Positions 24,142 through 31,963 of a stretch of DNA of 64,000 nucleotides are shown in pieces. Origin of the DNA: Salpingoeca rosetta. Lineage: Eukaryota; Protista; Choanoflagellata. The translations under genes and the position numbers were made by a program. Positions within the stretch are counted from its first letter, which is position 1; the number at the start of each line of letters is the position of its first letter. The notes under the pieces are model-generated. The model was not told the DNA's origin, did not search any database, and saw only the letters and a list, made by a program, of their open reading frames with translations. The stretch lies in the NCBI GenBank assembly GCA_033442325.1, contig JAWQFM010000006.1, positions 957,200-1,021,199 of the forward strand, in the 5' to 3' direction.

Positions 24142-27100
24142 TCAGTCCCATTCATCATCCGAAGCATCTGCAGTTGTTGGAGCAGCACGTACAAGAAGCG
24201 GAAACGGGGTGAGTGGCGAGAGATTGAGCGGAGATCATCACGCACGCACACACGCACGCACGCACGCACGCACGCACGCACGCACGCACACACACACGCA
24301 CACACACACACAAAACCACCAAATACACACAACACACAAAACAACAACACACACAACACACACACACATACACACAAAACAACAACAACACACAAAACAA
24401 CAACAACAAAACACACACACACACACTGACACGCTACACGACCGCCACAGCCCAAAGCCAAAGCAAGCATGCGTCCCCCACCTGACTCATCGGAGATGAC
24501 CTGGCGCCGGGCGTCCATCGCAGATGCGAGCATATCCATCAGCGTGTTCTTCGGGCTCGCACACAGCGCGGGCCGCGGCTTCGTCTTCACCTTGCGCAAT
24601 GTCGCCTTTCCGCGCCCAAGACCACCAAGTGACGCCAGCAGCGCTGTGCGCGGATCGAGTTGCACACCACGGACAGGCGCCGCACCATCACCATCACCAT
24701 CGCCGTCGCTCTCACCGTCACCGCTCTCGCCACCGCTGTCGCTGGCGTCCACCTTCTTCAGCCCAGTCTTGTCGAACTTGCGGAGTGCGCTCAGCAGCGA
24801 ATCACGCGGATCTGCCGCCGCCGCCTTGTGGTGGGCGTTGACCTCCACTTTCCTCAGGCTGTCGCGTGCACTGGCGTTCTGAATGGCCTTGAGCAGGTTG
24901 GAGCGCGGATCCTGTGGCCGTTCGATAGGCTCCGCCTTGCGCAGCGCCGCCTTATCCGCTTTTCTGATGGCGGCAAGCAGTGCGTCGCGTGGCTCCTCCT
25001 CCTTTGGCGGTGGTGGTGGCGGCGGCGCCAACAGCGCGTTCTTCTTCGCGTTGCGAATGGCAGACAGCAGGTCATCGCGTGCGTCGTGCTTGCGGTTGGC
25101 GTTCACTTCGCTCGCGTCCACCTTGTGCAGCCGCGCAAGCGGATCGCTGCTCTGCAGAGCACTCAACAGCTGCTGCTGCTCGCTCGTTGGCGTGGGCAAC
25201 GCTGGCGCCTCCGGCACAGGTGGCGGCGGCGGTGGTGGTGGTGGTGCACCACGACCAGCAGAACGGCCATCACGATCGCCGTCATCGTCATCATCGCCAA
25301 CAGCATGGTCTTGGCTCTTCCCCGCCACGCGCGTTGGCGATTGTGGCTCAATTGGGAGACTCGTGAGTGACCCCTGATACGCACGCACGGGCCCGCTTCC
25401 AAGTGACGGTGGCGGTGGTGGCAGGTCATCTGAGTCATTCAGGCTGCTTGCTGTCCGGCTGCCTCTGTTGCTCGCCACGTCCACAGCAGCACCACCCATC
25501 GTTGCCGTTGCTGGTGTTGCCGCTGGCGATGATGACGATGCGAGTTGTGCTGATGGCGTGTCCTCCTGGAGAAGAAGGTCAACGGGCGGTGGCGGCAGCG
25601 CGGTTGCAACATCTTCACTCACCACCGCCGTCGATGCGCCTGTTACGCCAGCAACATCTGCTGTGGTTGCTGGCGTTGGGATAGAAGTGGACACCATTTC
25701 CTCTGGTGGTGGGGGAAGGTTTGCCTCCATCTCAGGCGGCGGCGGCGGCAGCACATCAACGTCAACACCAACATCAACACCAGCATCAACGCCAGGCGAT
25801 GGTGTGGTGTGGTCTGCTTCCTCTTGCTCCTCTCCTGCTTCCAGTGTTGGTGGAAGTGGTGGTGGCGGCAAATCAAACACGCTGTCCCGCTGCTGCTGCT
25901 GCTGCTGCTGCTGCTGCTGCTGCTGTTGCTGCTCCTCGCTCTCCTCAGCGAGACTCGGCAGGATGCCAGCCTGTGCGCTCGCCTTTTGTGCGGCCTTCAT
26001 GCCCTTCTTCGTCCTGGGCGCGGGCTTGGCGGACACACCCGGTGGTGGTGGCGGCGGCAGTGCGTCGTCCTCAGCCGACGACCAGGTGCGCTGCTGGCGA
26101 TGATGCGCATCACCCAGGCTCTCCGAGCTCGACTGGTGCTGCTGGTGAATGGAGGAGATGGAGGCCTGGCTGAAGCGTTTCGGTGCGACCGGTGGCGGCA
26201 CTGCCAGCTTCTTCCCACTCGAGCGCGAAGACACCGACGCGTTCCGCGTTGACGCTGCGGTTGATGTGGAGATGGAGGATGAGGATGAGGGCTCTGCTGT
26301 TGGTGGTGGCGGCGGTGGCGGCAGCACGGCACTCTCCTCGCTGCTGGGATCGCTGTCGTCACTGCGCTCACCATCAGCGCCGTGCGGGAGAATGGTCAGG
26401 TAGTCGCTGTCCGTGGACACACGCGAGTCTCTGCGCTCCTGTGCGTTGCTGCTGCTGCTGATGTTGGCCTGTGCGCACGCGCTTGCATCAGATGCGCTCC
26501 ACTCATCGTCGCCACCATCAAACACGGAGGGAATGCCCTCCTGTGCAGCAAGTGCGCCCAGCATAACGGCGTGGTACGGCAGTTCCATCTGCGACGGCGC
26601 CTTGTGTGGCGCCAGCATGGATGGATCCAGGTCATCCTCATCAAAGAAGTCCTTTCCAAACTCCTCCATCTCGTGAGTGGAAGGCGCGGTTGCTGGTGCC
26701 GGTGCTGTTGTCGTGTCGATTGCTTCGCTGCTGTACTGCTGTGGCGGCGGGATTGGCGGCGGCGGCAGCACGCCAAACTCGTCATCGTGCATGTGAGCAT
26801 GGGCGCGACCAACGTCAGCACTGCGGTCAGGGGTGGATGCCGTGGATGTGCCTGAGAGCACGGGTGCAGGCGGGCAGGTGGGCGGAAGAGGCAATTCTTC
26901 GTTGGGCAGCGTGTCCACATCAATACTGGTGTTGCTGAATGCAGAGCCGGCGCGAACTAGCACCTGAATGTGTGGAGCAAGTGGCAAGTGGGAGAAATGG
27001 TGTATGTGTGTGCGTGTGTGTGTGTGAGAAAACACGACCATACACTTGAGTGAGATCGACGGAGAGAAAGAGCGACTGGTCCAATACTCATGGCGAGCAG

Positions 27101-30100: not shown

Positions 30101-31963
30101 GGTGGGGTGGATAGTATGGGGTTGCAAGGTGAAGAGGGGAGTGTAGGAGAAGAATGGGGAAGTGAGTGACACAACAAGACTGAGCAGCGCCGCCAAGACC
30201 ATGTCACCACACACACACACACACACACACACACACACACACACACACACACACACACACACACACACACACACACACACACACACACACACACACACAC
30301 ACACACACACACACACACACAGAGCAAGAACACGAGCAACGTGTCCCGCTTCCACCATCTCGCGTCACATGTCCACAGGAAATGTTGTTGTCTCACCGAA
30401 GCGAGCTTGAGACCCATGGTCTTTGAGTCGAGTTTGCGCTTGTCGCAAATTGAGACAAGGAGCTCCTGCAAGGTTTGGGATGGTTCAGCGAGGGTCATAG
30501 TGGTCTGCTTTGAGGGCAGGTTCACCCGGACCATGACCTTGCCCTGGTTCTTGGGCTTTGCAGACTTGTCCACTAGGATTTGGAACGCTTGTGTCTTCTG
30601 TCCGGTTCTGTTGAGATGCAGGAGGCGGTGACGGGTCTCGGCGTCTCGAAGTCGCTCCTCCTGCCGCTGTTTTGCCGTCCTGATGCCCTCCTGCATCTGC
30701 TCTTGCAGCTGTGGATGCAGCCACATGTGTGAGTGTGTGAGTGTGAGTGTGTGAGTGTGTGAGTGTGTGAGTGTGAGTGTGTGAGTGTGTGAGTGTGTGT
30801 GTGTGAGTGCGAGTGTGCGAGTGTGTGTGTGTGTGTAAGTGTAAGTGTAAGAGAGTGTGAGTGTGTGCGAGTGTGTGTGTGTGTGTGTGCGTGTGTGGGC
30901 GTGTGAGGGAGGGAGGAAGTGCGCGCGCGCGTGAGCGTGAGCATGAACTGTTGCCTTGCCTTGCAGCGCAGAAAGTTGGACAACAAGGATTGCTACGTAA
31001 TGCAAGTGCACGTGTTTGTGTTTGTGTGTGTGTTGCTTGGCGAACCTTTGTGAGCTGCTGTGAGGAGGCAAGTTGTGCGCCGTAGCTGAGACATGAGCCC
31101 TTGGCGTGCCATTGCAAGAACGTGTCCTTGGTGCGCTTGATCTTCGTCTCTGCCGTGATCTTCAAGTTGAGCTGTTGCAGGAGGTGGGAAGTGCAAAGGC
31201 GATGAGAGGCGTGTGCGTGCATGTGCGTGTTGATGTGTGCGTGTGTGTGTGTGTGGGGGGGGGGGGAGAAAGTCAGAAGGACACACAAATTGAGAGCTGA
31301 CATGCGCGTAGCAACTGAAACATTATCCAATAAAACCAGGGACTTCCACACGAACACAAAGACACACACACGCACAGACAAACATATACACAAAGACACA
31401 CACACAGACACACAGACACACACAGACACACAGACACACACACCAGTTGTGGTCTCACCTCACGGCCGGATTTGCCGGACGAGACGAGGCGGTATGGGCT
31501 CTCGGTTGATTCCGGGGTCACCCTCAATTCCAGCGTGATGTATCCGTCAGTCAGCTCACGCCAGCCTTCAGGGTCACCTTGCATGCTGCACACGAACAGA
31601 GCAGAGCAAAAGCAATGCAGAGAGTGGGAGTGGGAGTGGGAGTTTGTGAGTAGATGGAAGAGGAGGGCGTGTGTTCATGTGTGAGAGTTTGTGAGTGTGA
31701 TCACTTGTGACGTGTGTGCGTGTGATCACTTGTGACGTGTGTGTGTGTGATCGCTTGTGACCTGTGTGCGTGTGAGCTAGCACCGCTTTCGCCTTGCTGA
31801 TCTCACCTCCGCAACACACACACACACACACACACACACACACACACACACCGGGTACGCACCAGCTGTAGACGGCGCAGATGTATCGGCCGCATATCTC
31901 TGGTGGACCTGCGGTGTTGTGCTCAACGCCGAAGTTGCTTCCGATGGAAGCGGCGATGCTCAT
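24142..31963 (-). CDS. WASP-family Arp2/3 activator: EVH1, 2x Ras-binding/ubiquitin-like, degenerate GBD, Pro-rich, 6x WH2, C, acidic DDEWD
   Basis: EVH1-like: [27 protein letters not shown]-like: [27 protein letters not shown] and [30 protein letters not shown]-like: [33 protein letters not shown]2: [15 protein letters not shown] and five similar. C helix: [13 protein letters not shown]. Last coding exon 24167-24142 completes DASDDEWD*. Confidence 0.85.

Follow-up and report, generated by a model that had tools for sequence, protein, structure and literature searches.

The window, that is, the whole stretch of DNA that was analysed, comprises 64,000 nucleotides of the choanoflagellate Salpingoeca rosetta (GenBank assembly GCA_033442325.1, contig JAWQFM010000006.1, positions 957,200 to 1,021,199, forward strand); positions below are those of the window. 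A minus-strand gene extends from 31963 to 24142. Six-frame translation and inspection of the junctions give 11 exons that join into one frame, with a coding sequence of 5058 nt (1685 codons) and no internal stop. The start ATG is at 31963 and the TGA stop codon at 24144–24142. The order of the encoded elements is as follows: an EVH1 domain, a helical linker, two Ras-binding-type domains (RBD1 and RBD2), a basic stretch with ISAP, a WAID-like domain, the motif RRKAPAPP, a proline-rich region of ~860 residues, six WH2 motifs, a C helix and a terminal DDEWD. A first-pass annotation, made from the letters alone, had proposed a single gene with EVH1, two RBD-type domains, a GBD-type segment, polyproline, a WH2 array, a C helix and an acidic tail; the 1685-codon frame and the co-linear orthologues described below bear this out.

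The gene, its exons and its orthologues

The exons are as follows.

31863..31963, minus strand: exon 1, from the first ATG of the open frame; start of EVH1; donor GTGCGT
31459..31585, minus strand: exon 2, EVH1 strands; 66% identity to the M. brevicollis orthologue
31046..31171, minus strand: exon 3, C-terminal part of EVH1 with the FLQW...YG motif; 76% identity to the M. brevicollis orthologue
30397..30708, minus strand: exon 4, EVH1 helix, conserved helical linker and first half of RBD1; Pfam RBD at exon residues 59–98
29993..30090, minus strand: exon 5, second half of RBD1; co-linear with orthologues, phase compatible
29627..29723, minus strand: exon 6, linker helix and first strand of RBD2; placed by tblastn with the M. 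brevicollis orthologue and by splice sites
29265..29421, minus strand: exon 7, core of RBD2; Pfam RBD at 20.8 bits and a match to the orthologue profile
28982..29053, minus strand: exon 8, last strand of RBD2 and a basic stretch
27276..28735, minus strand: exon 9, basic residues and ISAP, WAID-like domain, KRAP motif, Ser/Pro/Arg-rich region
24482..26963, minus strand: exon 10, a single open frame with the acidic/proline-rich region, six WH2 motifs, C helix and start of the acidic tail
24142..24167, minus strand: exon 11, end of the acidic tail (DASDDEWD) and TGA; acceptor CTGCAG, phase completing the codon

All ten introns are of the GT-AG type, and their phases are compatible throughout. Intron 6 of the model spans 29626–29422; the last intron is 314 nt long, and DDEWD with the stop codon is encoded 3′ of it. 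The short exon 6 is required to keep the frame between RBD1 and RBD2 and was located by aligning the M. brevicollis orthologue to the window.

Relatives were found with phmmer, using the GBD region as the query against 1.8 billion proteins. The resulting family shows 30–45% identity, and its named members are all choanoflagellates, namely M. brevicollis, Salpingoeca kvevrii, Didymoeca costata, Bicosta minor and Barroeca monosierra; environmental contigs also contribute. The M. brevicollis orthologue is XP_001750372.1 (UniProt A9VCB7), an uncharacterised entry labelled 'WH2 domain-containing protein'. For both S. kvevrii and D. costata, the orthologue is one open reading frame, designated 'complete', in a transcriptome assembly. 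The complete family sequences begin with EVH1, continue with two RBDs and a WAID-like domain and end with WH2, C and an acidic tryptophan, and all exons of the S. rosetta gene are co-linear with the full-length orthologues. The gene is single-copy, since the family GBD profile matches only this locus in the genome (E 3e-58). Protein homologue searches with exon 10 and with the WH2-C region gave no match, their candidate lists probably being swamped by low-complexity words, and a search with the full-length family alignment returned two proteins only.

Five RNA runs from two studies hold 0.62–0.65 of the sequence words of the locus, and the exonic share of the locus is 0.64. The alternative to a single gene is that the EVH1-RBD part (exons 1–8) and the GBD-WH2-CA part (exons 9–11) are separate genes or transcripts and that the continuous frame is an accident of the model. 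The first-pass annotation had itself raised such a division. However, the order from EVH1 to acidic tail recurs in single open reading frames of five other choanoflagellates, in independent transcriptomes and gene models. The splice phases fit at all junctions, exon 9 has no in-frame ATG upstream of the conserved domain that is placed to start the conserved protein, and the word share in the likely RNA runs equals that of all exons combined. We find a division into two genes scarcely credible. Splice phases, orthologue co-linearity and the word share of the RNA runs together indicate that exons 1–11 form one gene.

EVH1 and the paired Ras-binding-type domains

Three folded domains precede the GBD remnant, as follows.

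30703..31900, minus strand: EVH1, residues 22–120, spliced over exons 1–4; orthologue profile, PDB matches and orthologue model
30001..30543, minus strand: RBD1, residues 174–252, exons 4–5; Raf-like/Cobl-like ubiquitin fold by Pfam RBD, orthologue model and PDB profile
29004..29632, minus strand: RBD2, residues 286–356, exons 6–8; paralogue of RBD1 by hhalign, orthologue profile and model

The EVH1 domain was tested through the family, with a profile of four orthologous N-termini. The spliced N-terminus of the gene matches this profile with 132 bits (E 1e-40). Against the PDB, the profile finds EVH1 domains only, with EVL (2.3e-5) and Homer (3.5e-5) at the head, followed by Mena, VASP and Spred. 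Structural comparison was made with the AlphaFold model of residues 30–365 of the M. brevicollis orthologue (mean pLDDT 77), which lies on the Homer EVH1 with a TM-score of 0.83–0.86 and a root-mean-square deviation (rmsd) of 2.2–2.5 Å. Pfam WH1 is found in two of the nine orthologues, with 25.9 bits in that of S. kvevrii. No similarity was detectable between this EVH1 and the WH1 exon of the organism's canonical WASP; the EVH1 profile weakly matches the Ena/VASP-like and Homer-like EVH1 loci of the genome. The peptide-binding face keeps the W and the F-x-Q-W. Profile and model together show that the N-terminus has an EVH1 fold of the Ena/VASP or Homer kind, its nearest relatives being the EVH1 domains of EVL and Homer and not the WH1 of WASP. 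Because the peptide-binding residues are kept and the protein has eight LPPPP motifs, self-association or recruitment of Ena/VASP is possible.

The two RBD-like segments had been placed by the first-pass annotation at 30543–30397 and 29421–29265. These positions are correct, the first domain continuing into exon 5 and the second into exon 8. With exon 4 alone, Pfam RBD (PF02196) reaches 34.3 bits (cut-off 25.7), and exon 4 is the best RBD match in the genome. On exon 7 alone, the score of 20.8 bits is below the cut-off; a profile of RBD2 built from the orthologues only matches exon 7 with 95 bits (E 1e-25). All nine orthologues have a Pfam RBD match, at 28–56 bits, and four of them have it in two stretches. 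RBD1 and RBD2 align with each other in hhalign at a probability of 98.8% (E 1e-16).

In the model of the M. brevicollis orthologue, both RBDs have a pLDDT of 77–84, and Foldseek matches this part to tandem ubiquitin-like proteins, di-ubiquitin and ISG15, at E 1e-8. In this orthologue, the two segments thus model as ubiquitin folds. A shape search of the ESM Atlas returned Homer and Cobl-like 1 as well as RGS12 and RGS14, with their tandem RBDs. A feature search with the EVH1-RBD part returned only Grb10-like RA-PH clusters at 0.76 and is uninformative. The profile and model evidence shows RBD1 and RBD2 to be paralogous, Raf-like/Cobl-like ubiquitin-fold domains set between EVH1 and the GBD remnant.

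The closest described arrangement of two adjacent Raf-like RBDs is that of RGS12, RGS14 and Loco, and the Raf RBD itself offers a comparison of contact residues. RBD1 keeps arginines equivalent to Raf R59 and R89, and RBD2 keeps the R89 equivalent, which is invariant in both domains. Unlike these proteins, the S. rosetta gene has no RGS, GoLoco or kinase context.

From the GBD remnant to the acidic tail

The second half of the protein carries the following elements.

28527..28556, minus strand: CRIB remnant, basic residues and I-S-x-P (RRKIEISAP), by direct reading; HxxHVG half absent
28221..28484, minus strand: WAID-like helical domain, a homologue of the autoinhibitory segment in the WASP GBD by profile, hhalign and model
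28086..28118, minus strand: KRAP-type motif RRKAPAPP, fitting the class I SH3 ligand pattern RxxPxxP
25194..26963, minus strand: acidic/proline-rich region with eight (acidic)-L/V-PPPP motifs, by motif scan
25110..25175, minus strand: WH2-1, LLSALQ...LHKV, by motif scan and Pfam
25011..25076, minus strand: WH2-2, LLSAIR, degenerate, with LLAP in place of LKKV, by motif scan
24921..24986, minus strand: WH2-3, LLAAIR...LRKA, by motif scan
24837..24902, minus strand: WH2-4, LLKAIQ...LRKV, by motif scan and Pfam
24738..24803, minus strand: WH2-5, LLSALR...LKKV, by motif scan and Pfam
24582..24647, minus strand: WH2-6, LLASLG...LRKV, the most widely conserved WH2 of the family, matched in most orthologues checked
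24495..24551, minus strand: C (central/connector) helix, with WASP-type spacing by direct reading; conserved in orthologues
24145..24497, minus strand: acidic tail ending in DDEWD, spliced across the last intron

The segment previously called a GBD is one in its autoinhibitory WAID half, which matches WASP GBDs, but not in its CRIB half. Of the CRIB motif I-S-x-P-x(2-4)-F-x-H-x(2)-H-V-G, only the ISxP part is present, preceded by basic residues, and nothing resembles F-x-H-x-x-H-V-G. Pfam PBD gives no match on the gene at E 10, and a genome-wide PBD search found the canonical WASP and not this gene.

The WAID-like domain opens with a motif, SLLAEGV..DPR.P, that is nearly invariant in the family, and S-L-L, D, R, P, R, G and F are invariant within the domain. 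The five best PDB matches of its profile are all WASP or N-WASP GBDs (E 0.02–0.1), over the autoinhibitory segment. In hhalign, the domain also aligns with the GBD-encoding exon of the genome's own canonical WASP (89%, E 2e-6). Its model is a helical unit with a pLDDT of 90–97. Foldseek of this model against the PDB returned nothing at E 0.001 or better; in a second look with VIA, the best match was 1EJ5, the autoinhibited WASP (Z 4.9, rmsd 3.9 Å, 84 residues, 23% identity), and the next had Z 3.2. Because of the profile, hhalign and 1EJ5 matches to the WASP GBD and the lack of HxxHVG, the segment is best described, from sequence and model, as a GBD in which the WAID half is kept and the CRIB half lost. 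Prediction of a complex between the WAID-like domain and the segment containing the C helix returned no answer (score 0.01), which is evidence neither way.

Ankyrin-repeat proteins that appeared in the phmmer results were rejected as relatives, the match being confined to a stretch, 'SLLAEGV..D.R.P.GWTAL', that resembles a single ankyrin repeat. This ankyrin-repeat-like stretch, nearly invariant in the family, lies at 28400–28484 (residues 448–476) and is matched 5–9 times in each long ankyrin-repeat protein. The canonical WASP of the genome has a similar stretch, EGNFDASNIPGEWNELL, by convergence or shared ancestry. A second CRIB-like fragment is seen just before the KRAP motif, at 28067–28163 (residues 555–586), in this species only in the alignment.

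The KRAP-type motif is short and present in one copy, and eight of the nine family members checked have it. Its consensus is that of KrRAPpPP, the syndapin-binding (SH3) motif of Cobl and Cobl-like (PMC8282341). A Ser/Pro/Arg-rich stretch and ten x-PPPP runs separate the GBD remnant from the WH2-C-A part; eight of the runs are L/V-PPPP with acidic flanks. In the middle of the proline-rich region there is an internal acidic DDEW (26499–26510, residues 1002–1005), which resembles a further acidic-tryptophan element.

Pfam WH2 scores 48.2 bits (cut-off 23.1) in 4 stretches, and the motif scan finds six helices 28–52 residues apart, five followed by a complete L-[KRH]-K-[VA] and one degenerate. 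The six WH2 motifs of the first-pass annotation are thus present, with the qualifications that one (25076–25011) has no LKKV part and that the number is species-specific, the orthologues having two to four. The positions given there for the array (25175–24582), for the C helix (24551–24495) and for the DDEWD and stop that follow are correct. The C helix conforms to the WASP-family pattern, in which three large hydrophobic residues, spaced three apart, precede R/K-R/K and one more hydrophobic residue (PMC3298513). After it comes the acidic tail with a tryptophan near its end and then the stop codon. The orthologues end in DWED, DWD, EWE or QWD, and conservation of their C and A regions extends as far as the last tryptophan. 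These comparisons show a C-terminal WH2-C-A module of the WASP type, and the conserved C-A region argues for activation of the Arp2/3 complex.

The arrangement of six WH2 motifs resembles the general layout of the tandem-WH2 nucleators. The protein could then be mainly an Arp2/3-independent nucleator of the Spire, Cobl or VopL type, in which C-A is accessory or vestigial; the spacing of the six motifs and the completeness of five of them fit such a protein. Spire, in particular, has an array of four WH2 motifs with ~30-residue spacing. In contrast to the present gene, Spire lacks C-A and carries KIND, FYVE and a region for myosin binding, and the WH2 number of the gene is not conserved among its orthologues. 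In the orthologues, the number of WH2 motifs is no more than two to four, yet wherever the C-terminus is complete, the C helix and the acidic tryptophan are retained. It follows that the conserved function is probably that of C-A, i.e., Arp2/3, and that the six WH2 motifs are a lineage-specific expansion in this species; Spire-like nucleation would be an added property rather than a conserved one. We consider a mainly Arp2/3-independent nucleator very unlikely.

The choanoflagellate family, WASP and Cordon-bleu

S. rosetta has a canonical WASP elsewhere in its genome, on the plus strand of contig C5 at ~57500–61600. Its elements are WH1, a basic stretch (KGKGK), a complete CRIB (IGGPSNFRHLGHIG), WAID, polyproline, a pair of WH2 motifs, the C helix and an acidic tail whose last residues are DDDWDDDDDDF. 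The possibility that the present gene is the organism's WASP orthologue was rejected on this account. Because the canonical WASP exists, the gene is a second WASP-family member, and its relatives make up, by sequence, a second subfamily of the WASP family, choanoflagellate-wide and with the CRIB lost. The assignment is to the WASP family rather than to the WASP subfamily because the CRIB is not present as a full motif and the nearest relatives of the EVH1 are those of EVL and Homer.

With WASP and N-WASP (PMC3298513), the gene shares the EVH1/WH1 fold, basic stretch, WAID, polyproline, WH2, C helix and acidic tryptophan tail, in the same order. It differs from them in the two RBD-type folds and the conserved helical linker between EVH1 and GBD, in a CRIB reduced to ISxP, in an EVH1 that resembles those of Ena/VASP and Homer, in having six WH2 motifs where they have one or two, and in a protein about three times longer. 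A lineage-specific rearrangement of the N-terminal regulatory part before a conserved GBD-polyproline-VCA core is also seen in WAWH (WASP without WH1) and other WASP-family variants (PMC3298513). However, WAWH lacks EVH1 and keeps the CRIB, whereas the choanoflagellate family keeps EVH1, has lost the CRIB and has gained the RBDs.

The likeness to Cobl and Cobl-like 1 (PMC3849942, PMC8282341, PMC5748978) consists in ubiquitin-like domains of the Cobl/RBD clan on the N-terminal side, a KRAP-type motif (K/R-R-K/R-A-P-x-P-P), a long proline-rich middle and C-terminal WH2 motifs, three in Cobl. The Cobl proteins, in contrast, have no EVH1, WAID, C helix or acidic tail and do not act via Arp2/3, and Cobl has three KRAP motifs where the gene has one. 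Cordon-bleu is distinguished by WH2 without C-A; in the present family, the WH2 motifs lead into a C helix and an acidic tail, both conserved. The earlier description of the gene as a WASP and Cordon-bleu chimera of no described family therefore needs amendment. The Cobl flavour is real in the match of RBD1 to COBLL1 and in the KRAP motif, but the architecture is not isolated, being that of a choanoflagellate-wide family; no paper on this family was found, but its M. brevicollis member is already in the databases, uncharacterised. A survey of WASP-family evolution (PMC3298513) and a paper on the holozoan filopodial toolkit (PMC3748353) contain no mention of such a protein, and full-text literature searches with accession numbers and with the domain combination found no description. 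The subfamily is thus apparently undescribed, with an orthologue that the databases list without characterisation.

Proteins of the WASP family convert signals from GTPases into branched actin. To our knowledge, all described members respond to Rho-family GTPases or to other non-Ras inputs. We think it fairly probable that the product of the gene, 1685 residues long, is a WASP-family nucleation-promoting factor of class I, one of a conserved choanoflagellate subfamily, that is gated as follows. At rest, the WAID-like domain would hold the C helix, as in WASP; this autoinhibition is suggested because the WAID is conserved. Recruitment and release would depend on inputs other than Cdc42. The first could be a GTP-bound small GTPase of the Ras/Rap type acting on the tandem RBDs, the second an SH3 protein, e.g., a syndapin-like F-BAR protein, acting on the KRAP motif, and the third contacts of EVH1 or profilin with the LPPPP motifs. 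The freed C-A would activate the Arp2/3 complex, with the WH2 motifs supplying actin monomers, and the array of six WH2 motifs may add Arp2/3-independent nucleation of the Spire/Cobl kind or barbed-end capture. Because the CRIB has been lost while two Raf-like RBDs are present, we infer that Ras/Rap input would come through the RBDs; the combination suggests that one GTPase input was exchanged for another, the CRIB for the RBDs. The coupling of Ras/Rap input to both Arp2/3 and Spire-like nucleation, and a role in the collar or in filopodia, which the first-pass annotation had suggested, are conjectural.

Several points weigh against this proposal. The binding, autoinhibition and nucleation that it assumes are deduced from sequence and models, and the structure of the N-terminal half is taken from the M. 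brevicollis orthologue rather than from this protein. At the positions of Raf R67 and K84, the RBDs have no basic residue, so only part of the Raf contacts is kept, two of the four being lost. RBD1 is as close to the ubiquitin-like domain of COBLL1 as to Raf: its best solved match is that domain, 2DAJ (E 0.009, level with Raf). The PDB support for the WAID homology is marginal when taken alone (E 0.02; Z 4.9). Transcript support at the locus, being a word share of RNA runs, is indirect and not read-level, and the organism's own annotated protein was absent from the results of all protein searches.

The residue losses and the COBLL1 match point to another reading of the same architecture, in which the ubiquitin-fold domains are structural or interaction modules of the Cobl type and not GTPase sensors. 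Regulation would then be via SH3/F-BAR proteins on the KRAP motif, via phosphorylation of the Ser/Pro-rich part, or via calcium/calmodulin, as in Cobl and Cobl-like. We know of no GTPase binding by the COBLL1 ubiquitin-like domain. Pfam Cobl (PF09469), which scores 15.9 bits on the gene against a cut-off of 25, reaches that cut-off on RBD2 of the Barroeca orthologue with 25.2 bits. The KRAP-type motif of most family members fits as well, and the nearest feature clusters in the Atlas are Cobl and Cobl-like, at scores of 0.75–0.83, which serve as a lead only. However, Pfam RBD outscores Pfam Cobl in every member (28–56 against 15–25 bits), the arginine equivalent to Raf R89 is invariant in both domains, and the loss of the CRIB alongside the gain of the RBDs looks like a swap of GTPase inputs. 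We regard Cobl-type modules regulated in this manner as possible, if rather unlikely, and retain the proposal of a gated Arp2/3 activator with a Ras/Rap-type input.

It is tempting to extend this proposal to the origin of Cordon-bleu. Schultz and Terhoeven placed the root of Cobl-like at Bilateria and left unexplained a cobl-domain protein with WH1 in Nematostella and one with CRIB in Capsaspora (PMC3849942). Because the choanoflagellate family unites EVH1, Cobl/RBD domains, KRAP, WH2 and a WASP core, and the best match of RBD1 is 2DAJ, a common origin with Cobl is possible. The ancestor may have had EVH1, two ubiquitin-like domains, WAID, KRAP, polyproline, WH2 and C-A, with EVH1, WAID and C-A subsequently lost in the Cobl and Cobl-like of animals. 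The Nematostella and Capsaspora proteins would fit such a history. The higher scores of Pfam RBD throughout the family weigh against a common origin. The joint proposition, that the family is the pre-animal root of Cordon-bleu and also the first Arp2/3 activator gated directly by Ras/Rap, is tentative, and we hold it to be unlikely. If true, the origin of Cobl would move from Bilateria to before the animals and be tied to the WASP family.

The subfamily belongs to the closest living relatives of animals and has dropped the Cdc42/Rac-binding CRIB, with two Ras-binding-type domains instead. These features suggest a direct wire from Ras/Rap to Arp2/3, testable in a choanoflagellate with genetics. 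The family combines hallmarks of WASP (WAID, C-A) with those of Cordon-bleu (ubiquitin-like domain, KRAP, C-terminal WH2) in one conserved protein, which bears on the origin of Cobl. The increase from two to six WH2 motifs within the family is a natural experiment on the effect of WH2 number.

Some features of the relatives and of the surrounding DNA may be added. A small zinc-ribbon insertion (CxxC...CxxC; Pfam Zn_Ribbon_1, DZR) is present in the proline-rich region of the orthologues of S. kvevrii (1211–1254) and D. costata (~1020–1045) and absent from the gene in the window. Long microsatellites of the (GT)n or (GTGC)n type sit immediately 3′ of the donor in almost all introns of the gene, as at 31330–31450, 30208–30321 (a (GT)n repeat), 29860–29990, 29100–29260 and 24240–24420. 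A (GTT)n repeat of ~145 nt occupies 23423–23569, some 600 nt beyond the stop codon. At the other end of the gene, ~850 nt upstream of the ATG, the minus strand has at 32807–34621 an intact open reading frame of 604 residues of the pogo/Tigger DDE-transposase type.

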